From positions 31,558,001 to 31,622,000 of the forward strand of contig NC_058378.1 in assembly GCF_018350175.1 (NCBI RefSeq): 64,000 nucleotides of DNA, written 5' to 3'. The DNA comes from Felis catus. Its lineage: Eukaryota. Positions 8,025-58,922 of the stretch are shown one piece after another. The notes under the pieces were generated by a model. The model did not search any database. It was not told where the DNA came from and saw only the letters and a list, made by a program, of their open reading frames with translations. The position numbers and the translations under genes were made by a program. How positions within the stretch are numbered: the first letter of the stretch is position 1; the number at the start of each line of letters is the position of its first letter.

Positions 8025-8185
8025 NNNNNNNNNNNNNNNNNNNNNNNNNNNNNNNNNNNNNNNNNNNNNNNNNNNNNNNNNNNNNNNNNNNNNNNNNNNN
8101 NNNNNNNNNNNNNNNNNNNNNNNNNNNNNNNNNNNNNNNNNNNNNNNNNNNNNNNNNNNNNNNNNNNNNNNNNNNNNNNNNNNNT
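8025..8185. other. Assembly gap (N)
   Basis: N run. Confidence 1.
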
Positions 8186-8441: not shown

Positions 8442-8589
8442 NNNNNNNNNNNNNNNNNNNNNNNNNNNNNNNNNNNNNNNNNNNNNNNNNNNNNNNNNNN
8501 NNNNNNNNNNNNNNNNNNNNNNNNNNNNNNNNNNNNNNNNNNNNNNNNNNNNNNNNNNNNNNNNNNNNNNNNNNNNNNNNNNNNNNNNN
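8442..8589. other. Assembly gap (N)
   Basis: N run. Confidence 1.
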
Positions 8590-20653: not shown

Positions 20654-21097
20654 NNNNNNNNNNNNNNNNNNNNNNNNNNNNNNNNNNNNNNNNNNNNNNN
20701 NNNNNNNNNNNNNNNNNNNNNNNNNNNNNNNNNNNNNNNNNNNNNNNNNNNNNNNNNNNNNNNNNNNNNNNNNNNNNNNNNNNNNNNNNNNNNNNNNNNN
20801 NNNNNNNNNNNNNNNNNNNNNNNNNNNNNNNNNNNNNNNNNNNNNNNNNNNNNNNNNNNNNNNNNNNNNNNNNNNNNNNNNNNNNNNNNNNNNNNNNNNN
20901 NNNNNNNNNNNNNNNNNNNNNNNNNNNNNNNNNNNNNNNNNNNNNNNNNNNNNNNNNNNNNNNNNNNNNNNNNNNNNNNNNNNNNNNNNNNNNNNNNNNN
21001 NNNNNNNNNNNNNNNNNNNNNNNNNNNNNNNNNNNNNNNNNNNNNNNNNNNNNNNNNNNNNNNNNNNNNNNNNNNNNNNNNNNNNNNNNNNNNNNNN
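20654..21097. other. Assembly gap (N)
   Basis: N run. Confidence 1.
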
Positions 21098-40489: not shown

Positions 40490-40716
40490 NNNNNNNNNNN
40501 NNNNNNNNNNNNNNNNNNNNNNNNNNNNNNNNNNNNNNNNNNNNNNNNNNNNNNNNNNNNNNNNNNNNNNNNNNNNNNNNNNNNNNNNNNNNNNNNNNNN
40601 NNNNNNNNNNNNNNNNNNNNNNNNNNNNNNNNNNNNNNNNNNNNNNNNNNNNNNNNNNNNNNNNNNNNNNNNNNNNNNNNNNNNNNNNNNNNNNNNNNNN
40701 NNNNNNNNNNNNNNNN
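40490..40716. other. Assembly gap (N)
   Basis: N run. Confidence 1.
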
Positions 40717-45309: not shown

Positions 45310-45620
45310 ATTGCATCGGCAAAACTATTAAATGAGAGAAAATTCCTACACGGGCTACAACATGGATGAGCCTGGAGGACATCGTACTAAGTGAAATAAG
45401 CCAGTCACCAAAGGATAAATACTTTGTGCCTCCACTGATACAAGGTACCTAGAGCAGTCCAGTTCCTAGGGGGGTGCTGGGGGCAAGGAGGGGGAACGCG
45501 GAACAAGTGTTTGATGGGCACAGACATTCAGTTTTGCAAGGTGAAGAGAGTTCTGTGGACAGATGGTTGGTGATGTTTGTACAACAACGAACTGTATACA
45601 CCTGGAATGTGGGTAGAGTG
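45310..45620 (+). mobile_element. L1M 3' fragment
   Basis: acaacatggatgagcctggaggacatcgtactaagtgaaataagccagtcac. Confidence 0.78.
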
Positions 45621-46812
45621 GCAAGGTCTAGGCTATGTGGATTTTAGCAAGATTAAAAAAATGGAGAACAATGAAAGTACAAGGAACGTGGGCTTTCTGG
45701 AGGCGAACGCGTGGTAGGGGTGCAGACGGGAGAGGACGAAGCCAGCGAGATGGCAAGGGGCGTGGTTATAAAAGAGGCTGCCGCCAGGGGGACGTCCTCC
45801 GGAGGAGAGGGGACTTTAAAAAAACAAGGCGATCTCATACGGACGCGAAGCTGTTGGCTGGACCCACAGCCAATCCCCGTCCAGCCCCTGATCTGGACCG
45901 AAGCCTGCGGCACACACAAGGTTTGCGTGAACGGGGTATTTGAGGAAACCCGGACGGACGCAATCGGTCTGAGGTGCCGTGAGGTGGGGCCGAATCGTGT
46001 GGCCAGAAGAGGACGGAGCGGTGATCCACGGACCTAATTCAGTGGAAGCAGGAGCTCAGAGCCACAGGCGACCATGACACTGTAGATCCTCAGCGCCTCC
46101 CATATCTCCGCGCCCCGGCTTTCCAGGGAATCTGCAGAAATCCCAAGGCTCACGCTGGACTCCCCAGAGGGTCAAAGGCCATCTTCTCTAGATCGTAAAG
46201 GGGAGCGAAGCCCCAGCTGGGTCACATTTCCGCCACGTCCCCTCCTTGATCTTGCCGACCACCGTTTTTGTTAACGGCTCACCCTTTTTGCATTGCAGCC
46301 ACAACCTTTGGTGAGGGTTGCTGTCCGCAAGGCAGTAGAGCACAGCGGGGAAGAGCGGGGGTTCCCGAGCCAGACGTGCTGGATTTGGGTCCTGGATCCG
46401 CCACTTACAGTGTGGATTTGGACAGATGGTTTGAGCCCTGATTTATTCATCTAGCAAATGGGAGCGATGATATTAGGAGAGCTCCTGGGAGAAGCGAATG
46501 TGGCACCTCATGTGGACTATGTAGAACGGCTCACACAGTGCTCACCACGATCTATTGTCTAGAGCCCGCCCCCACAGAGCCTGGTAGAACTCAACAGTTG
46601 ATACTGATGGAGGTATTGGTATTACTTTATGGAGGGCCGTGGGTTCTTGACCTCCGCTCTGACCTACCCAGAGTCCTGTGTGTGTTGGCTCGGGAAGGAC
46701 AGAGCCTGAGCCCCGCGTGAGTGATTCCACTTGGGCGTTCTTCAAGGGAGTGGGGCACAGACCTACTACCGAGAGTAGGCATGGAATTGTCCTCTTAAAG
46801 GGAAGGCAGGTT

Positions 46813-46818
46813 TTTAAT
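46813..46818 (-). terminator. TBATA poly(A) signal ATTAAA
   Basis: ATTAAA about 110 nt after the stop codon. Confidence 0.7.
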
Positions 46819-46928
46819 AGGCTCCCTGTGATAGGAAAGTCGGGGTTGCTGTGGAGGCCGTAGGGCTGGGAACAACCTTGAACCTGGGGGCTGCTCTTGA
46901 GCAGGGCGGGCAAAGTGGCTCGGACTCC

Positions 46929-47014
46929 TCAGCATTCTGCCTCTGGCTTTGACGGTTTCTCTGCTGCGTTCTGGCTTGAATGCATTCGGAGGACTTGGGC
47001 TTTCCCGACATACT
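46929..47014 (-). CDS. TBATA: TBATA last coding exon: EYVGKAQVLRMHSSQNAAEKPSKPEAEC*
   Basis: ctcccag| acceptor; TGA at 46931-46929; matches the recalled human C-terminus. Confidence 0.93.
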
Positions 47015-48025
47015 CTGGGAGCAGGGAAGACATCGGTCAGGAGAGGACAGGGAGGGGACAGGCCCCAACTTGGGAGCTGCTCGGGAGACCCAGGTGGACC
47101 AAGACGTGGGTCAAGCCCCGCTTCTGCTCTGGGCTCCGCTGGTGACTCGGGAGGGGCCGACTCCCCTCCCTGAGCTTCACCACTGCCTCTTCTGTCTACA
47201 CCCAGGGAACAAATACCCAAGGAGTGCCTACTCTGTGCCAAACACTCAGTCGGGCCCTTGGGACCCCTTACAGTCTAGTGAGGGAGAATCGTGTACATGC
47301 TGGCTATCTGTCCTCTTCTCTCCCCCTGCCCTGGCCTAAGGCACCAGAACCATGTAGCAGCCTCCTCCCCGGTCTCCCCTCATCCCTGCCTGCCCCCAAC
47401 AGTCCATTTTCTACTCAGCAGACAGAGGGGTCCCCCATGCCCTGCATCTAACCTTCCAGTGCACGCCTATGCCCTCTGCATGAGACCATGGGCCGGCCCT
47501 GCCCACCTGGCCCATTTCCCTTCTTACTACTGTCCTGCCCCACAAGGCCCCGGCCACCCTGGCCTGCTTATGCCTGCTCGTGCTCTCATGCACACACCGG
47601 GCAGGTGAGGGCCCTACTTCTGGGCTCTCCCCAGACCTGCACAGGGCTGGATCCTGCCTGTCGTTCAGCCCAAGGAGCCCTCCCCCGACCCTGCCAGTCC
47701 TTCTTACTGTCCCTCATTTTACCCTGCTTTATTTTCCTCTGGCACCTGTCCCCTCAGGTGTTTTTATTTGTTGTCTGCACTCCTCCTCACGGGGCTAGAA
47801 GCTCTATAGCAGCAGGAACTTGTCTGGAATCTTCCCCAGAGCCCCACTCACAGCCGCTAAGCAAGCCTCTCTCAAATGAATGAGTGAATAGATGAATGGA
47901 TGGAATGGGCAGCTTCCCTAGGACAGGGACTCATCTCTGGGGTCCTTGACCCCTCCCCACCCGAGGAGTACAGCCAGGGTGGGCCTCGGGGAGCCCCCAG
48001 GATGATCCGCTGCGTGGAATCTTAC

Positions 48026-48078
48026 CCGGTTTGTCGCCTTTGGGTAGAGGCGGTGTCTTCGTCTTCTTCAAGGATTGG
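48026..48078 (-). CDS. TBATA: TBATA coding exon 8: SQSLKKTKTPPLPKGDKP
   Basis: gttatag| ... |gtaaga; phases 2 and 1 fit the neighbours. Confidence 0.92.
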
Positions 48079-49554
48079 CTATAACCGACACAAAGACAAA
48101 TCTGGGAAGGCGAGGCCTGAGCCCTCTGCTGCAGAGTGGAGGCAGGGAAGTGCTCCGGGGAGACACAAGAGCCCCCCCTCCTGGAGAGCCCCAAAGTATC
48201 TGTCCCTGGCTGGCACCACCCAAGCGGGACCCCGACAGACAACTGTGACTCCATTGCCTGCTGTGGCCCCAAGGAGCCAAGGCCCTTCTGCCCCAGGAGC
48301 GGTAAGGGAGGCCCCCGCACCAGCCCACCCCAGCCCTCGCTTGGTCCCTGCTTCCTCACAGAGAGGAAGCCTTCCCCCGTGAGTGGAGAACACAGAATTT
48401 CTGCTGCCCTGATAGAGGACTTCAGCTTTGCACCAAAGCAAACCTTTTTACGCGCCCAGTGTAATTTTCTTCCCTAGGGGTCTGGGAGAGGGGTTTTGAG
48501 ACGTGAAACGGAGGCCACCAGATGGGCGGTGGCTTGCCCCAGGTCATAGTGAAGCCTGCCTTCCTTCTGTGCCTCCCCTGGTCTCTCAAAGTGGAAAAGA
48601 GCACCCCGTTCCGGGCCAGAGCAAGAACCCAGGCCTTCTGGTTAATGAGCACGAACACCTGCCTCCTTCCCCCCTGCCCATGCTGCAGCCACCCCACACG
48701 TGTCCCCTGGAGCGAGCACGTTCCTGCCTTCCCTTCCTGACTGCCCCCACGCTCTCATCTGCTCCTGCAAATCCTCCCTACCCCAGTAGTGTTCCCCAAG
48801 TTCTATCAGAAAAGCTCCGGAGATTGTCAAAATCACGCATCCCCTGGTTCGTCCCCGACCTGCTGTGTTGGAATCTCTAGGTATTCGCATTTTTAACAAG
48901 GTCTCCGGCAAATCTGCGTGCGGCTGGGCTCAGAAGCTAGGCCAGCCCAAGGCTGAATCAACTGTTCCCGAGCCTTAGGTCTCTCATCTGTAAAATGCAG
49001 GCGGTTGTATGGACCACAAACGTGTAAACTGTCTGTCTGGACGTGCCAGGCAGGCACGGTGGGCACCCGCTATTGCTAGTTCTGTTGCTGATGTCCAGGC
49101 CCTCCTCACCTGCTTCGTGAGGACTTCCCTTTCCCGGTCGCCTCCAGCCATCCAAGGCACTTAACCCCGGCATTAAGGTATTTCTGCTTGCCTGTGTTAG
49201 CTTTCCTCCTCTACTTGTCTTCTCAAAGACCAAGAGCATCTGGAGGGGTAGATGCGGCTTCTCCAGCCCTGCCTTGTTTATAGCTGACACAGGTCATCCC
49301 TTGGGCATCCCCCACAGCCAGCCGCCAAGGTCCGGTCTGGCAGAGGGGCCTTCATGCAGCACCGGCTGGACTGGAGGGTCCCTGAGGAAGGGCCCAGGCC
49401 CGCTCCCGCTCCCCCAGCATCGGCTCCCGCAGCCCAGGCGGTGGCCAGCGCTACCAGTGCCTTTTCTGGACCACCCTTGGCCTCACCTGGGAGGACAGGA
49501 GGCTGAATGCGAGGGAATGGTTCTGGGAACTGCGGGGAGGGGTGCAAAGCTCAC

Positions 49555-49699
49555 CTGCAGGGTGGCTGTTTCCTCTCTTGAGATGGCTCTTGGCCTTCCT
49601 GGAGCTGATCCAGAAGTTTTTCTACCGGGATGGAGTCTAGGGGCTGAGGAAGGAGCTGCGCCACCGCTGTCTGCAGGAGCCCCAGGGCCAAATCTTTCT
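49555..49699 (-). CDS. TBATA: TBATA coding exon 7: EKDLALGLLQTAVAQLLPQPLDSIPVEKLLDQLQE...QPPC
   Basis: cttgcag| ... |gtgagc; in frame. Confidence 0.95.
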
Positions 49700-50474
49700 C
49701 TGCAAGCACAGCCAGGGGGCGCAGTCCTCAGTGGCTACACTCACCCTGTCCTGTCCCCACAAGGGATGGGCTGGAAGAGGGGCCTCCAGCTCTCCTGCCC
49801 GGCCTGGCCCAGGCAGCTTTCTGCCTCCAGCTCCCTCTTCTGTCGTGGCCCCTGTGGGCACGTGGCCCTCCCCCCCACCCCCCTTCTGTCACTACTCTCT
49901 CATTTGTGTACACCTTGTTCTTGGCCCCCTCTGGCCCGCCCACCAGCCCACCCACCAGCCCACCGGTCCTGCCTCCTCCCCTGCCTTCTGCCTTCTGCCT
50001 TCTGCCCCTCCCCCGCCCCGCCTCCCCTCTCCCTCTGCTCGGCCCCTGCTCGGATACACCTTCCGGCCCGTGTCCCAGTGTGCGCGCACGCACGTCATTC
50101 CCGTGTTCGCGAGCATGCGCCTGTGTGCTTATGTGCACGTGTTGCGTCTGTGTGTGCGTCGTGTGCCCCACGGCGGTGGGTGAGGGGGTGTGTCTGCTGA
50201 GTACACCTTTGGACCCCTCCCTCCCAGGTGCCATGGCCAGTGGTCAGCGCAGAGGCGCCTCCGAGAAGCAGGGTCGGGGCAATCCCGCCGAGGACGGAGG
50301 AGGAGGGTGCAGGGGCGTGGTGCAGCTGGGAAAGGTTAGTTTGGGGCTCCAGAAAAGGAGAGGGGGCCCAGGCGGAAGGCCCTGGGCGGGAGCCGAATGA
50401 CACCCAAGTCCTACAGAAGCAGAGAACAAGGCCCTCCACTTCGAGAAAGGCGTGGGCACGGGCTGCGTCCTCAC

Positions 50475-50556
50475 CCTTCGGGGGAGCGTATAGTAGCCAG
50501 AACTGGATAGCGCTCAAGGAGTCTGTCTGCAGGATTTGGCAGAGGAGCTCCAGGAT
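50475..50556 (-). CDS. TBATA: TBATA coding exon 6: ILELLCQILQTDSLSAIQFWLLYAPPK
   Basis: ccacag| ... |gtgagg; highly conserved C-terminal motif. Confidence 0.95.
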
Positions 50557-52457
50557 CTGTGGGCAGGAGGACAGGCCTTGGGTCAGGGTGCCCGGATGGC
50601 ACGTGCCAGCCAGCAGCACAGGCCCCCCTCCCGCTCCCTCAGCCACACGCTTGTCTAAAATGGTCCCCGCGATGGACCCTGCCCCCCCCAATGGTCCCCT
50701 TCCTTGTGACTTCACACTTTATGGAGTGCTTTCTCTCCCGCCAGTCCTGGAGGGAGATTCCTAACCTCCTCACTGGCCAGATGAGGAATCTGAGGCCTTG
50801 AAAGGACACCTAGCAGGGAGAGTGTGGCAGAACGCAGCCTCTGAATCAGGTACGTGGGCCCCTCATTTGTGAAGCCTGCGTGGGCTGATTTTACCCCAAA
50901 GTCCCTCACTGGGGAGGCAAAGGCAGAGCTGGCCAGTCAGCTCCTCGGAGACGCACCGAATCCTTGGTGTGGGGGTTTCAGGGACCACACAGGCCTCCCC
51001 GCCCTGGAGTTCCCAGGGTCTGGAGATGCCAGCAAAGAGGTGGGGTGATCCCAATGGGCGGGCTGAGGGCCAGGGCTGGCTGATGCCGCAGATCGCCCAG
51101 CGTGGGGCTCCGTCCCGCCGAGCAGTGTGCACACTTCGCTGTCGGCCGGTTCCTCAGCCTCTGGCACCTTTGCCACTTCGGGGCCCTCTTTCCCCCGTGT
51201 TCTCCAGTCACGGGTCATCAGGGGAGGATCCAGCTCTGTGTCAGATGGGCTAAGGGGGCGGCTGTGCCTATGGTCGGCCGGAGTTGGGGCCTGTGGTGGG
51301 AGGTGGAGCCCCTGAAGTCCTGGGAAAGTGGGGTCCCCTTAGTGCTTGGCGGTCAGTCTTCCCATGACCTGAAGGGGCCCCGTCAGTCCCCAGCAGGTCG
51401 GCCTCATTCTTGGCAGAGTGGGAACTAGGCCAAGGCTCTTCCCAGGCCTATGCCTGCTAGGGTGCCCCCTTATCCCCAGATACCCGCCTGCTGTCGTGAC
51501 CCCCACCCTGGGTGTGCCCCTGGGCCCTTCTCCGTTCTCCGCATCCAACTTACCTGCCCTGTGCCCCCTCCCCACAGGACCTGAGAACCTAATTCCAGGC
51601 AAGATGAGGCCGCCCTATGGTGGAGAAAGTACTGCTCTAGTCCCAGCTATGCTGCTCCCTCTCTGGGGACCTGGGCCACAGAATGTCACCTGGCAGGGCC
51701 TTGGCCTCCCTATCCATGGAACGGGGATCCTGGGCCCTGTCTGCTCTATCCACTTCACGGGACTGTTGTAAGTCTCCAAAGGGACTGCGTGCTCGGAAGT
51801 GCTGATCACGGGGAGGGTGTCGAGATGCGGGCTCAGTGTCTAACCTTTCCTGGAGAATACGTATGCGTTGTCACAGGGGACCCTCAAGTCGCCTCAGCCC
51901 AGCGGAATCAGTCACGGACTCATGCCAGGCCTCGATGGGAAACTTGCATGCGGAGGAGGTGGGTTTCTGCTTCATGTGGTACAGACCAAACCCCCCAGAG
52001 TGTGCGGGGACCGGGCTGGGACTGGCCTTGCAGCCTGCAGGCTGCAGCACACCAGGGCGTGGGCTGGGGACACAGCTGGCAGGACCCTGCTCTCCACGCG
52101 TGTCACTCCCTCCCTGAACTCATCCAGTGCCACAGCTGGAGCAGCCCCTCGAGACATGTTCCTGCTCCCAGCTTGGGTAGATCCTGGCACTAAAGCCCCG
52201 AGGGAAAAGGCCTTCAAAGAGGGGGGGGGAAGGCTCACACAGAAACCTGGAGGCGGCAGGGGATTGGATCCAGGCTCCTGACTCCCAGGTCTCACAGCCT
52301 CGGGTACAAGCGTCCCTGGGAGAGGCCGCACTCGAAAGCAGTTTGTAAGCACCTCATTGGGATTACTGTGAGCCTGGGAGCAGCAACCACCATGTTCTCA
52401 GCCCTCAAGACGAGGCCTCGGTTGGGCCTGTGGCCCCCAGCCTTCCCAGGGCCTCAC

Positions 52458-52634
52458 CAGCAGCTCCTGATCCGGCAGCTTGAAGGTCTGGACTCCTCCA
52501 TCTTTACCAGAGGGATAAATCCGTGGGTCCTGGCGGGAGTGACGGTGGCCAGTGGCTCTGGTGCCAGTGGGGATGAGCCTGCCGGTCTCAGCTGAGTATT
52601 TTGCTCCCTGCTCCCGCGGAGGCTCCTCCTTCTG
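52458..52634 (-). CDS. TBATA: TBATA coding exon 5: QKEEPPREQGAKYSAETGRLIP...DQELL
   Basis: ctcccag| ... |gtgagg; 59 codons; AKYSAETGRLIP motif. Confidence 0.94.
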
Positions 52635-52666
52635 CTGGGAGCAAAGTAGCTAGAGACTCCAGGCAG

Positions 52667-52698
<32 letters not shown>

Positions 52699-53298
52699 GC
52701 TCAAGGAAGAAGCCAGAGCAGAAGAGAAGGAGGCCCAGTCACACCTCCAGGGCACCATCACCTCCTGGAATCCCAGCGTCACAGCGTTGCAGGGACCTGG
52801 GAGGATGACCGGGCCAGCCCCACCCTGTTCTGGACCCCTCTCCCCAGCCGGGAGCCCATCAGTTAAAGCCAAAGTTCTTCTTCCTGGAACTTCTTGAATG
52901 CTGGAGCCCCTGGTGGTCCTCTGAAGTCCTCATACTTCCTCCTGGGTAGACCCTCCCTGCCCAACCCCCCCCCCCCAAGCCTATCAGAGATTTGAAAGCA
53001 GTATCCTGGGCCAAGGCCCCCGTCGCCTACCTTAATTCCTAGCTCAGCTGCCCCCAGGTCTTTCCCCCAGAGCTTGGCATCCTTTCTTTGCCCTGGGAAA
53101 ACCCTTCTGAGCCAGGCCTGTGGGTACAAGGCCTGGGACCTCCTACCCCTGCAACCCCAGTTGAGACTGGTAGTATCTTTCTTCCCATTTTAAAGGTAGG
53201 AAAAGTGAGACCCAGACAGTTTAGCTGAGTTGCAGTGAGCATTGCAGTGAGTTAGCTGCAAAGCAGGGATGAGAACTCTGCTGCCCAAGACAAGGGCA

Positions 53299-53502
53299 GG
53301 GGGTGCCTGGGTGACTCAGTCGGTTGCTTTCAGCTCAGGTCATGATCTCACGGTTCGTGAGACTGTGCCCCATGTTGGGCTCTGTGCTGGTGGTATGGAG
53401 CCTGCTTGGGATTCTCTTCCTCCCTCTCTCTCTGCCCCTTCCCCGCTGTTGTGCTCTCTCTCTCTCAAAACAAATAAATAAACATTAAAAAAAAAAAAAA
53501 AA
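53299..53502 (+). mobile_element. Can-SINE in a TBATA intron (antisense to the gene), TSD aagacaagggcagg
   Basis: SINEC sequence with a clear TSD. Confidence 0.9.
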
Positions 53503-54102
53503 GACAAGGGCAGGACCAGACTCTGTCCCCAAGGGCCAGGCCTGTCCTAAGTCCAATTCCAACTACCTTCAAGCTGCCTCCCAATTGCCTTTACTGGCTT
53601 GCCAGCAAATAGCACCCGTGAGGCCACCCCATCCTGTTTGAAATCCTTCGGTGGTCCTCCGCTCCTTAGGAGATCTGACACTACACCAAGTTGAGAAACT
53701 AAGAACAAACGCCTCTTCTTGCCCACATTCAAAGTCGGCCCCTTCCCACCCTCCCCCCGATGGCTGCCCGCTTCAATTCCCTGGACCTCAGCCCCGGTCT
53801 CTAAAGATGTCCTGCATTTCCCAGCTTCTGAGCGTTTGAGCCGCCTGCCCCCACGAGGAATGCCTCCCCTGTCGGGTTCTGAACATCCCACCTCTGCTAT
53901 GAACCCTTCTTGGACTTCTCCACCTAGCCACGATGGACCCTCCCCCTTCCACTGGTGCCGCGCAGCCCCTCCTCCCGTGCCAACAGAGCGCCCCTCGTGA
54001 GCGCTGTCCCTGCACCCCATTAGGTGGAATCCACTCGGGAGGGATTCCAAGGGACGGCCCCGTCGCACCCCTTCCCAGACAGCTCCTGTGTTCCGCACCC
54101 AC

Positions 54103-54196
54103 CTCTTTGCTCTTCAGCTCGTTCTGGGTGAAGACGGCCACCCGAGAAGCCAGGTTCCCCTTTGGGGAAGGGGAAGAAGTTCCTTCTTCCAGGCCT
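54103..54196 (-). pseudogene. TBATA: TBATA coding exon 4, frameshifted: EAWKKEL, then a 20-nt segment, then NLASRVAVFTQNELKSKE in a different frame; premature TGA at 54116-54114
   Basis: The exon is 94 nt between a phase-1 acceptor (gtcccag|) and a phase-0 donor (|gtgggt), which is not frame-compatible. The two conserved halves lie in different frames. Confidence 0.88.
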
Positions 54197-55055
54197 CTGG
54201 GACGAGGGGACAAGACGTTGCCAGCTGATACCCGGGGTCCTCCTCTTTGCCCTCCCTGCGGCACCCGGCACTGGAGGGCTGTGGGGGGTGGGAAGAGCCT
54301 GCTCACCTCCCCAGCCTTCTGCCCTGTGTCCTACAGGGAGAGGGGGAGGCGGTGCCCTTGAGGGAAGGAGCGGCAATGCCCCCATTGGTAGGTGAGTGCG
54401 GTCGCTACCGGAGGGGGCTGAAGTTCATATCCCAGCCTGTGGCTTCCCCGGGGAGGTGCTGGAGATGCTTGGCTACCGGGGCCGAGATGCCTGTGGTTTA
54501 ATCTAGCTTTGCCTCTTTTAGGAGCCGGAGGCTGGCACCGAGGTTGGCTCAGTTGCTATGCTGTGCCAGTCACTCAGATACTGGACTGTTCCTGGCGAAG
54601 CCTCCCAAGCCTCTCTGCGCTGCAGGGCTGTCCTGGTTCCTCCTCCTTGGGGGCTCTCCCCATCCCCACCCCCGCCGGCGGGCTTTCCCTTGGCCCTTCC
54701 AGAAGGGTCAGACTGGGCAGGGCAGGGCAGGGGCCTCCAGAAAGCTTTTGCTCCAGCCCCGTCTCTGGCTGGATGGCTCTCACTGACTGGTGCCTGAACA
54801 TACAAGCTGCTCAATATTTCCAATATCATTCCTGCCTGTAGCTGTCAATCACGTGACTATCTGCCCGTCCTCTGTGATAACGCCTCAAACACCTCAAATC
54901 TGGGTAGGGGCCACATTTCTGAGGACCCGGGCAGTGGGGAAAAATGCACATTCTGCTGTCTGAGGAAATGTGGAAAACTCTAGGGTGCCCCACGGAACCC
55001 CACTGACCTAAGAGCACTGGTCCTTTCCTTCCCGGGAACCTGCCGAAGTACCCAC

Positions 55056-55211
55056 CATAAGGAAGCCAGGGGTCCCGATTGGACTGCGGGTCTCCGATGG
55101 GGACAGGGATGGTGGGCATCGTCATCAGACAGCAGGATAAGAGTGTGGCTTGAGGCAAGGGGGCCAGAGAGAACTTGTCTCTGACGACGCAGACGGGCTT
55201 CCCGGTGAAAT
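55056..55211 (-). CDS. TBATA: TBATA coding exon 3: DFTGKPVCVVRD...PTIPVPIGDPQSNRDPWLPY
   Basis: ttcacag| ... |gtgggt; GKPVCVVRD and PIGDPQSNR motifs. Confidence 0.95.
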
Positions 55212-56158
55212 CTGTGAAGGGTTAGAGGCTGTGGGAAGGAGGGCCTGGGCCTTATCTCTGATTATCTCTAGAGCAGGGCCACTAACTCTTCCGCTGCTAT
55301 CTCCTTGGTCTACACCACCATCAGGCAGGCCAAGAGAGTCACTCCTGTCACTTCTTTGTCTTCAACCTTCCAGTGGCTCCCACTGACTCAGTGAGATGGT
55401 TTAATGGTAACTGGGGTGACCTCTAAGGCCCACACAATCTGGACCCCCCCCCCCACCTCCTTTCTGGTGTATCTCCCTTCTACCCCTCCTTACTCTGTTC
55501 CAGCTGCACTGGCTTCCTTGCTGTTCCTCCAGCAGAACCAGGATACCTGCCTCAGGGCCTTTGAACTTGCTGTTCCCAGCTGGGACGTTCTTCCCCCAGT
55601 ATCCACATGGTTCACGCCCTCTCTGCTTTAGTTCTTTGCTCAAATCCCATGCTATTAATCAGGTCTCCTCCCCTCTAGAGCCTTGGCTTACCACACTCTG
55701 ACACTTATCTATTTCCTATCCTTCCCCGTCAGAGTCAGCTCCATGACGGCAGGGACTATCTCATCCTGCTGTATCCCCGGGGCCTAAAAAAAGTGCCTGA
55801 CCCAGAGTTCCCACTGAATAAGATACCTGATGAATGGATGGCTAAGTGGATGAATTGGCCTGCGTTAGAGAACGGAGTACAGTTCCGGGGCCGAACATTC
55901 ATCCGTTTCTCTGATTTTTAAAATGGCAGAATCGGCAATGAGGGAAATCCTGTAAGGGCTACACAGTCTGCCCTTGAAGTCTGCCCCACAAGTCCAGTCT
56001 TCCCTTGACCAAGTCCTTGCCAGTGGCCAGGCAGCTCTGTGACCCAAATCTCCATCCTCTCTGGGCCTCGGCTCCGAAACAGGGGCTGCGTCCTCCCTTT
56101 CCAGTTCTCAAGACTGGCCCACCACCTTCAGCCAGGCCCTGACCTCCCCCAGGCCTAC

Positions 56159-56394
56159 CTTGGATGTGGGTCACGTGTTGTGGGTGGGGGTGGTGCCGGG
56201 AGAAGAAGGAGTGGTGGCTGAGGCGGCCAAAGCGGTAGGCCCCGGGGCTTTGGGGCTTGGGGGTCCTCAGCGCCGCTTGGATCAGCTGGAAATCCACGAT
56301 CCCTGGGATCATCAGTTCTTTCCGTGGTCTGCCGTTCCCGTGGCTCCTTGGGCTGTGCCCTAACTTCTTTTCAGGCTTCAGCTGAGCCCTTGGA
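56159..56394 (-). CDS. TBATA: TBATA coding exon 2: PRAQLKPEKK...IPGIVDF...FGRLSHHSFFSRHHPHPQHVTHIQ
   Basis: ccttcag| ... |gtaggc; the conserved GRLSHHSFFSRHHPHP motif is present. Confidence 0.96.
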
Positions 56395-57759
56395 CTGAAG
56401 GAGAAGGTCAAGGAGAAGCTAATGGAGCCTCCTGGCTGCAGTGCCCACCCAAGCTCAGAGCTCAGTGCTTATATGTCTAGTCCCGAGACACGCTGAAGTC
56501 GCTTTCTAGGATTTCGCTTCCACCCCCATGGCACCCAAAGCCAGGCCTCCCCCGGGGTCCTTTCCCAACTGGCGCAATCCAGTCCCAGGGAGCCTTCTGT
56601 CTTCCTAAGGTGCTTTCACAGGGAGCTAGGATCTACTTGAGAAAACTCAGATGAATCTCCCAAGATCTCCGTTTTCTCCCGGAAACCATCTCTAAAGCCG
56701 GAAAAAGGACATAGACCCACCTACTCATCCAAATACGTGGGTTGGAGCAAAGGTGCATCATATACACCTCCAGGGGCAGGGGGCAGACAAAGAGCCTCTC
56801 CCCAAGCCAACTACTGGCAGCCCAGGAGAAGCCAGCTATAGGCAACACCCCCCTCGCCCCCCACCCCACCCCCACCCCGTCCCTGTACCCTCCGGGCAGA
56901 CTTGGCCCAGACTCAGCGTCCAAGGGCCAAAGCTGGAACAACAAGGCCAGACCACGTCAGCAAGTCCTTTGCGGTGGGGGCCGCTCCCAGGAGATGCCGA
57001 GCTGACGGGGCAGCTATCAGAGTTGCAACGCTTCGGGGAAGCGTCAAGCTCTTGCTTGGCTTCGCTGGAGACAAGCTTCTCAGGTTGTCTGTCCTCCACC
57101 CTGCACCCCTTCCCTCTCCTGACGATGCTGGGCCCTGCCTCCGGAGGAGGAGCTCGAGGTCAGTCCAGCAAGGATCCAAAGGGGGGTTGCTCTCCGCCTG
57201 GGGCCTGGTGAGACCACCTGCCTTCTCGCTGTCTGCATTCCCTTCTCCCGGTGGCCCTGGCTGAAGGGAGTCCCTCTGGAGAAGAGACGGACTCTGGATA
57301 TGCTAAGCAAGACGCTCTGCCCCGGGACCCTCTGAGGATTTCGCTGACCAGGCCCCTGAGTTTTCGGTGCCGTCCTCCATCGGCCTCTAAGGGATCTGGG
57401 ACTTAAAGAAATAAAGCAAACCTTCTCTGAAAGGTGCAGTTACTTGGTCTCTCCTACCCCAACTGACAGAGGGAGTCACCCCTTAAAAACCCCAGGAATT
57501 CTTGCTCTCGGTGCCTCTACCCCCTGCCACCGTGTCCTTTCCCTCCCCAGGGAGGGACCCAGTCTGTGACCTGTGCTAACTCAGGCCTGAGAACCCACGG
57601 TGGGGGGGGGGGGGGGGGCTGGCGGATGGCAGCAGAGGGCGAGGGAAGGACTGCGTCTCTTGGCCCCTGGGTCAGGTGAGTTCCCCAGGCCACGCCTGCC
57701 CCCCCTGCCCCACCCCCCCCCACGCCTTTGGTCAGCAGGACAGGCGCTTGGGGTCCTAC

Positions 57760-57806
57760 CTCATTAGTAGATGTTCAGCCAACGGGGTCTTCGCCTCTGT
57801 AGCCAT
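57760..57806 (-). CDS. TBATA: TBATA first coding segment MATEAKTPLAEHLLMS (the exon probably begins at 57916, after ttcctctcccccaag)
   Basis: ATG at 57806; AG|gtagga donor in phase 2; similar to the recalled human MATDVQLADYPLMS. Confidence 0.88.
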
Positions 57807-58922
57807 CGTAGGCTTTCTAATGGATAAAGGCCCGCGCACTTAACCCTAGCGTTGAAGTTGGATAACAGGAACTCTCACAGACGGGCGGTTCCTGGAGTTG
57901 TAACCCGGCGCAGACCCTTGGGGGAGAGGAATGGACAGCATCTCACAAAACCGAATACTTGCGTATGCTGTACCGCTCAGCAATTCCCTTCCCAGACATT
58001 CAGCCAAGGGAAGGGCAACAGGGGCCATTTGTGAGACTGTTCAGACTAACGTTGCTCAAATTGGCAAACACCAAACGTCCCATGGCGGAAGAATGGAGCT
58101 GTGCTCTGTGTGGTCAGCTGAACATCACCTTGCAGTGAAAACGAACCACAGCCACACGGAATGACGTGGGTGAATCTCACAAATACAGTTGCAAAGTCAA
58201 GGCAGGCAAGTCCCAGAAAACCTTACGGCCCGAGATCCTTTTTCAAAATAAAGTATAAAGGCAAGCCAAAGTCTCACACATGTGATCAAATGAGGGGGGA
58301 AAGGCAAAAAAATGCGAACTGCAGTGATTCAGCTAGTGGCTATTTCCGAGGGAAGTTGGGGGGGGGGTGTTGAAATGGGGAGGGAGTACATAAGGTGTGT
58401 TGATGATGATATTCTCGTTCTTGGTTTGAGAGGCGCATTTGCTGGTGCCCGTTATAATATGAAATAAACTAAATCAGTGGAGTGGATGAAGGATGATAGT
58501 TGTTGAGGAATTGTGATCAGTCTAAAAATCTATACATCGGAATATAGCTATACAGCTATGCATATACACTTACATTTACATTTACATAGATGTATCTATT
58601 TATCTGTCCCCAAAGTGCAGGGATCGCGGGTGCTAGGAAGGGGGCTGGGACAGGAAGTCAGTGCATTCTGAAAATTAACTCTCGGTCACAAGATCTGCAA
58701 GGGACCCCAGAAATCCCCAGGGCCAAAGGCTTATCAGGCTAGGGTGGAACTGGGTGGGGGGGCAGCACTGCCTGAGACTGGGGAAGGAGAGACTTGAGGT
58801 CCCAGAGCAAGGACCCAAACATCCTGACTTGACGCCTTTAAAGAGAAAAACAGTTGGCAGAACTTCCTTCGAGGGAAGCTGTGGATGTTCTCGATGATGG
58901 TTCTGCGATCTAGAGCACTTAC

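Follow-up and report, generated by a model that had tools for sequence, protein, structure and literature searches.

The window analyzed here, a stretch of 64,000 nucleotides, carries on its minus strand a gene in which one coding exon is out of frame and every other coding exon is intact. An earlier note, made from the letters of the sequence, had read this gene as TBATA and the exon as a recent frameshift in a felid. This raises the question of whether the frameshift is real, how old and how widespread it is, and whether the gene can still yield its canonical protein.

The gene is the single-copy orthologue of TBATA (SPATIAL). A tblastn search with the TBATA protein of Lynx canadensis (P0028), combined with inspection of the exon boundaries, resolved nine coding exons on the minus strand, with 90 to 100% identity to felid TBATA across the nine. 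The exon translations match the Pfam family SPATIAL (PF15256) at profile positions 1-18, 99-161, and 161-190, with E-values of 3.6e-5 to 2.8e-12 and matches on exons 2, 5, and 6, which bears out the gene identity given in the earlier note. In intact felid orthologues, the profile is covered from position 1 to 201, and the domain of the Lynx protein spans residues 79-274. A word search with the exon-6 region as the query returned TBATA proteins from more than 100 mammals, many felids among them. Exon 4 has one match in the whole assembly (2,425,747,038 bases in 71 contigs), i.e., it is single-copy; the window corresponds to 31.558-31.622 Mb of contig 22.

All nine coding exons have AG acceptors and GT donors, the canonical sites are undamaged, and no second lesion was found, in agreement with the intactness that had been claimed for the other exons. 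The exons are colinear with the Lynx, Herpailurus, and Panthera loci, and the splice dinucleotides are identical. Summed, the coding exons equal 1076 nt, or 1059 + 17 nt. Without these 17 nt, they encode 352 amino acids followed by a stop, the length that had been predicted upon their removal. The exons and the features discussed below are collected in Table 1.

Table 1. Coordinates of TBATA features in the window
Feature	Position	Strand	Description
Coding exon 1	57760..57806	-	47 nt; ATG 57806-57804; GT donor; tblastn
Coding exon 2	56159..56394	-	236 nt; SPATIAL domain begins (RFGRLSHHSFF...)
Coding exon 3	55056..55211	-	156 nt; phase 1 at end; carries R121C (55134) and A125T (55122)
Coding exon 4	54103..54196	-	94 nt versus 77 nt in other felids; frameshifted
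Derived 21-nt piece TCTTCCCCTTCCCCAAAGGGG	54157..54177	-	In place of ancestral GAAG, net +17; DNA alignments
Premature TGA	54114..54116	-	Codon 174, shifted frame; 11 nt ahead of the exon 4 donor
Tandem acceptor cAGAG	54195..54198	-	Normal AG 54198-54197; second AG 54196-54195, preceded by G
Coding exon 5	52458..52634	-	177 nt, intact; CAGCAG tandem acceptor
Coding exon 6	50475..50556	-	82 nt, intact; most conserved SPATIAL motif (ILELLCQILQTDSLSAIQFWLL)
Coding exon 7	49555..49699	-	145 nt, intact
Coding exon 8	48026..48078	-	53 nt, intact
Coding exon 9	46929..47014	-	86 nt; ancestral stop TGA 46931-46929
ATTAAA poly(A)-like hexamer	46813..46818	-	111 nt past the ancestral stop; pattern only

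On the minus strand, exon 4 follows the acceptor cag with AGGCCTGGAAGAAGGAACT, a foreign piece, and AACCTGGCTTCTCGGGTG..., and ends in AAAGAG before the donor gtgggt. In the sequence from 54350 to 53950, where the acceptor reads ...tcccag, the part of the exon beyond the foreign piece reads AACCTGGCTTCTCGGGTGGCC...AAAGAG. Both the letters of 54196-54103 and the switch of frame are exactly those that the earlier note had given. Where the window has GGAACT-TCTTCCCCTTCCCCAAAGGGG-AACCTG, four felid genomes have GGAACT-GAAG-AACCTG, which amounts to 21 nt for 4 nt and a net gain of 17; an equivalent description is a 17-nt insertion together with two A-to-G changes. As judged from this alignment, the derived change is complex and not a homopolymer slip.

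The inserted bases complement their flanks (54145-54196, minus strand), such that GGAAGAAG and CTTCTTCC can form a stem closed by a GAA loop. A second pairing in the derived exon start, of TTCCCC with GGGGAA around an AAA loop, results in two adjacent hairpins. The folding energies of the derived and ancestral alleles equal -11.8 and -2.7 kcal/mol, respectively, with a z score against shuffles of only -1.46. No direct or inverted template of at least 11 nt for the inserted bases was found within about 0.8 kb. A fold-back or template-switch origin of these bases is possible.

Independent data were used to determine whether the 21 nt exist outside the reference assembly. A run search was carried out with positions 54085-54245 as the query, represented by 14 sampled 31-mers, and the best holders were listed. 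At least 20 public runs from at least 10 studies hold 14/14 of the sampled words across the lesion exon. These listed holders comprise 16 samples of one organism, 1 sample of a second organism, and 3 gut or mammal metatranscriptomes; many are roughly genome-sized whole-genome runs from 2015-2017, and host DNA with the allele is also present in gut metagenomes. Approximately 39% of the 31-mers in the query overlap the 21 nt, so that about 5 of the 14 sampled words are expected to span it, and we calculated the chance that none of the 14 does so at about 0.001. The holder runs labeled as RNA contain intron words too and are hence uninformative on splicing. In addition, contig L008 (ENA ERZ27274757), from an independent MEGAHIT metagenome assembly, matches the window at 99.06% identity over 3.7 kb and has precisely the same 21 nt together with the neighboring E163Q change. 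This contig and a second one, L007, were reached via one protein cluster from a 183-aa ORF just downstream of the lesion, and a 121-aa sense ORF spanning the lesion had no match in the protein collection.

These data bear on the possibility that the frameshift is an assembly or sequencing artefact confined to the reference assembly. That reading draws on the general prior that assembly indels can be errors and on nothing else. It is contradicted by the identical 21-nt piece in the independent short-read assembly, by the contigs of the at least 20 runs from at least 10 studies, and by the complex nature of the change, which is unlike a homopolymer slip. Since the independent contig and the listed runs carry the same 21 nt, an artefact is excluded for practical purposes, and we give it almost no credence. 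The assembly artefact that the earlier note had named as a refutation thus does not apply to the frameshift, which lies in an exon that is single-copy.

To place the lesion among felids, we compared the TBATA loci of Lynx canadensis (L001), Herpailurus yagouaroundi (L002), a Panthera assembly (L003), and Puma concolor (L004); Acinonyx, Prionailurus, and Neofelis are represented by annotated proteins. The ancestral GAAG was found in 4/4 of the felid genomes and in read-contig L007, a Logan contig of SRR25058269 that is 97.3% identical to the window and, by this identity, comes from another felid lineage. The alignment of the exon across felids that the earlier note had suggested accordingly lacks the 21 nt in Lynx, Puma, Herpailurus, Panthera, and L007. 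TBATA proteins without a "low quality" flag are annotated for more than 12 felid species, including members of Panthera, Neofelis, Prionailurus, Lynx, the Puma lineage, and Acinonyx. They were found for lion, tiger, snow leopard, leopard or jaguar, and clouded leopard, and further for the fishing, leopard, and Iriomote cats, both lynxes, jaguarundi, puma, and cheetah. The annotated felid proteins that were inspected read EAWKKELKNLASRV at the lesion point, and the EAWK(K/R)EL(K/R) segment is conserved across Carnivora. The domestic cat was absent among the named felid TBATA proteins found. Judged from these sequences, the lesion is specific to one felid lineage.

By its divergence pattern, the window belongs to a felid outside the Puma-Herpailurus pair. 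L007 could not be placed next to the window as its close sister, as the felid lineages form an unresolved star in a 3.3-kb block. The Puma locus is without recognizable exons 1 and 2, its annotated protein has 306 amino acids, and its 5' part aligns badly; this 5' deficit may reflect a gap or an error in the assembly and not a biological difference. A 50-aa JGI protein named "mRNA interferase MazF" (P0139) lies inside the 90%-identity cluster of felid TBATA isoforms (P0022), which is probably a clustering or naming oddity.

The age of the lesion was assessed by comparing the window to a second haplotype, here called the ENA haplotype, which consists of L008 and L005 (ERZ27274757). These host contigs from a metagenome assembly were compared against window positions 45385-56817. 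In the 10,093 columns at which Lynx, Herpailurus, and Panthera agree (10.1 kb), 60 derived states are common to the window and the ENA haplotype, 18 are private to the window, and 22 are private to the ENA haplotype. The two differ by 0.4-0.7%, with 0.66% in the 3.3-kb block around exon 4, and this divergence reflects deep intraspecific variation or else the presence of a closely related taxon. The lesion is present on both haplotypes and therefore predates their coalescence; given its distribution in the alignment, it is younger than the split from the other sampled felid lineages.

The window differs from Lynx by 2.1%, and the two lineages split about 7 million years ago. On the basis of that split, a difference of 0.4-0.66% corresponds, very roughly, to 1.3-2.2 million years. 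The lesion had been described as young. This holds relative to the felid radiation but not otherwise: two haplotypes 0.4-0.7% apart carry it, and it is therefore far older than one individual or breed. In the scenario that we favor, a germline mutation in the Felis catus lineage would have swapped GAAG in coding exon 4 for 21 bases, a net gain of 17, after the split from the other sampled felids and before the coalescence of at least these two haplotypes.

The 21-nt allele is widespread. All of the listed holder runs (at least 20) have the full set of words, and among the matches listed there is no run with a share of about 0.6, as would be expected of a carrier of the ancestral allele. Both observations speak against a reading in which the allele is common yet not fixed, such that intact TBATA persists in the species and the reference individual carries a polymorphism. 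The run search ranks the best holders and so cannot show the absence of the other allele, and Logan contigs drop or hide alternative alleles, which leaves room for such a polymorphism. Moreover, R121C and A125T are absent from the ENA haplotype, and the locus is thus polymorphic. On the other hand, the presence of the allele on two haplotypes 0.4-0.7% apart makes it old. An old allele in every sample listed is most simply one that is at or near fixation, and we consider a segregating allele improbable.

Under canonical splicing, a full-length SPATIAL protein is not encoded, as the reading frame stops after 173 amino acids. Normal splicing would shift the frame after ...EAWKKEL, add 20 foreign residues, and end at the TGA at 54116-54114, the same stop and product length that the earlier note had derived. 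The 173-aa product retains the N-terminus and, of the approximately 196 SPATIAL residues, about the first 75, and the conserved exon-6 motif is lost. The premature stop lies in exon 4 of 9 and is followed by five exon junctions, at more than the 50-55 nt of the nonsense-mediated decay (NMD) rule; exons 5-9, as mapped here, are the five downstream coding exons that had been counted previously. Because five junctions follow the stop, the canonical TBATA mRNA should, by the established rule, be subject to decay. With this mRNA degraded, carriers would make little or no canonical TBATA.

The best explanation of the locus is a lineage-specific disrupted TBATA whose canonical protein is lost or strongly reduced. 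We consider this likely; the decay of the mRNA, the loss of function, and the fixation of the allele are what we infer from the gene structure and the distribution of the 21 nt.

Several routes by which the frame could be mended were tried and, by the arithmetic of the frame, rejected. Skipping of exon 4 leads to a stop after 161 amino acids, so the earlier claim that it does not restore the frame was right. Use of an AG at +37 that is made by the insertion (a pyrimidine run followed by AAAG) leads to a stop after 180 amino acids. For a downstream start, the only in-frame ATG lies 18 codons before the stop, and removal of the insert as a mini-intron is impossible, as there is no GT upstream of it. 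Joint skipping of exons 4-6 keeps the frame and would yield 240 amino acids, but it deletes the conserved core and is without support.

A further route is a cryptic acceptor in the restoring register that partly or wholly compensates for the frameshift. Exon 4 has three AGs in this register, at +2 (where cAGAG supplies its second AG), +11, and +14, each at a distance of 2 mod 3 from the start of the exon, and frame 1 remains open throughout exon 4. Use of +2 would give a protein of 357 amino acids (...WLPY-GLEEGTSSPSPKG-NLASRV...), in which 13 residues replace EAWKKELK and all downstream exons follow. Even then the SPATIAL domain would be altered, as the replaced segment is the one conserved in Carnivora. 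Strong acceptors have a CAG after a pyrimidine tract, and GAG is the least favored acceptor context. The normal exon 4 acceptor is such a CAG behind a pyrimidine tract, whereas the +2 site is a GAG and the +11 and +14 sites are AAGs downstream of two or three competing AGs. Judged by these contexts, the three candidate acceptors look weak.

The start of exon 4 resembles the known NAGNAG acceptors: exon 4 begins with cAGAG and exon 5 with cCAGCAG, and the difference between the felid isoforms of 351-357 amino acids lies at the exon 5 acceptor, which makes wobble of the acceptor a feature of felid TBATA. However, the two sites of a NAGNAG are separated by 3 nt and leave the frame unchanged, whereas the two AGs of exon 4 are separated by 2 nt, and the second has an unfavorable G at -3. 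With the canonical transcript decayed, a minor in-frame isoform could be the main stable mRNA. The protein search returned no full-length felid TBATA from transcript contigs, which argues weakly against such an isoform.

The exon 5 acceptor (52634-52640, ctccCAGCAGAAG) is itself a tandem CAGCAG, and some annotated isoforms use an acceptor further upstream (…KSKE-LLCSQQKEE…). The tandem and the upstream site account for the series of felid TBATA isoforms with 351, 352, 354, and 357 amino acids.

Selection on the coding sequence was assessed by parsimony over 801 nonsynonymous and 249 synonymous sites, with Puma left out of the polarized counts because of its 5' misalignment and missing exons 1 and 2. 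The terminal branch of the window has four nonsynonymous (P13L, R121C, A125T, and E163Q) and three synonymous changes, compared to 11 and 9, respectively, summed over the four other terminal branches. The ratio is about 0.4 on the window branch and on the other branches alike, and relaxation is not detectable at these small counts and low power. R121C and A125T are CpG transitions in the window that occur in neither the ENA haplotype nor the other felids; both lie upstream of the frameshift and are private or polymorphic.

Exons 5-9 (approximately 414 nonsynonymous sites) have zero nonsynonymous changes on either haplotype. By hand calculation, about 4 changes would be expected had these exons been neutral since the base of the branch (P of about 0.02), and about 1.65 had they been neutral only since the haplotype split (P of about 0.19). 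The counts reject an origin of the lesion right at the base of the lineage, and the pattern fits a lesion late on the stem and retained function equally well. The undamaged exons 5-9, with their splice sites and stop, are thus a point in favor of rescue by a cryptic acceptor that is also explained by a late-stem lesion, for which the P of about 0.19 applies to the tips alone. Overall, we regard rescue by such an acceptor as unlikely, and a disrupted TBATA remains the preferred reading.

The closest known system is the Tbata-null mouse. These mice are viable, both sexes are fertile, and their testes are normal; in old age their thymi are enlarged and contain more dividing epithelial cells, because mouse Tbata normally inhibits the Nedd8 pathway through binding of Uba3 (Flomerfelt et al. 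2010, PMC2964569). The likeness lies in the same gene with its canonical protein lost, and in the tolerance of mammals to TBATA loss. The mouse is a designed knockout in which the absence of the product was verified, whereas the cat carries a natural frameshift, under which an N-terminal fragment of 173 aa and some leaky in-frame splicing may persist. By analogy, the mouse null predicts the likely phenotype in the cat, in which loss of Uba3/Nedd8-pathway inhibition would leave more thymic epithelial cells dividing and the thymus enlarged at old age. Links of TBATA to kinesin transport in spermatids and neurons have been reported as well.

A less mild picture comes from work on Hirschsprung disease, in which a de novo TBATA R53C variant was found in a human patient, and knockdown and knockout of tbata in zebrafish were associated with a Hirschsprung-like loss of enteric neurons (Gui et al. 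2017, PMC5343413). This concerns the same gene and indicates that its disturbance can have developmental consequences. However, it involves other species and another type of evidence, and it conflicts with the mild phenotype of the mouse.

Among felid gene losses, the sweet-receptor gene Tas1r2 offers a parallel in that a single-copy orthologue in a conserved position is disabled by a frameshifting indel while relatives are intact. The Tas1r2 lesion, described by Li and colleagues in 2005, is reportedly common to cats, tiger, and cheetah and is said to be accompanied by further stops and a documented phenotype. In contrast, the TBATA lesion occurs in one felid lineage and is the sole defect, with no detectable decay elsewhere in the gene.

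We tentatively propose, with a confidence somewhat short of even, that the cat lineage either is a fixed natural TBATA null or retains TBATA only through an acceptor shift that compensates for the frameshift. If the null is fixed, the cat would offer, in a large animal, a spontaneous knockout in which thymic involution, KIF17 transport in spermatids, and the development of enteric neurons could be studied. If the acceptor is shifted, this would be one of the rare cases on record in which wobble at a splice site rescues a frameshift within an exon. A disrupted cat TBATA would show the dispensability of the gene in a second mammal and provide a natural model for thymus aging. As the reference allele is the broken one, cat annotation, orthologue tables, and variant-effect pipelines will be misleading at TBATA. 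A lineage-specific disabling indel in a dispensable gene is a familiar kind of event, and such losses are common in mammalian lineages. Since single-gene losses are common in mammals and the mouse knockout is mild, we rate the importance of the finding as moderate. In the literature that was searched, no paper was found on TBATA together with Felis or on TBATA loss in carnivores.

Some minor features of the locus complete its description. The window contains four runs of N, at 8025-8184, 8442-8589, 20654-21097, and 40490-40716, with 979 bases in total. A strict RFX/X-box pattern occurs 6 times in the window versus 6.3 expected, i.e., at chance level, and none of these matches lies upstream of exon 1. 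Looser pairs of X-box half-sites were seen by eye in the scanned region 57807-58100, with GTTTGCC...GAGCAAC near 58070-58050 and GTTGCCC near 58018. In addition to the poly(A)-like hexamer of Table 1, a second one, AATAAA, is found at 46447-46442 on the minus strand, likewise as a pattern only. In Puma, a gene with a Pyridoxal_deC domain (L004:1-735) is arranged head-to-head with TBATA, and by synteny it is expected in the window beyond approximately 58000 on the plus strand. This neighbor is consistent with SGPL1, which we take to be the gene next to TBATA in other mammals.
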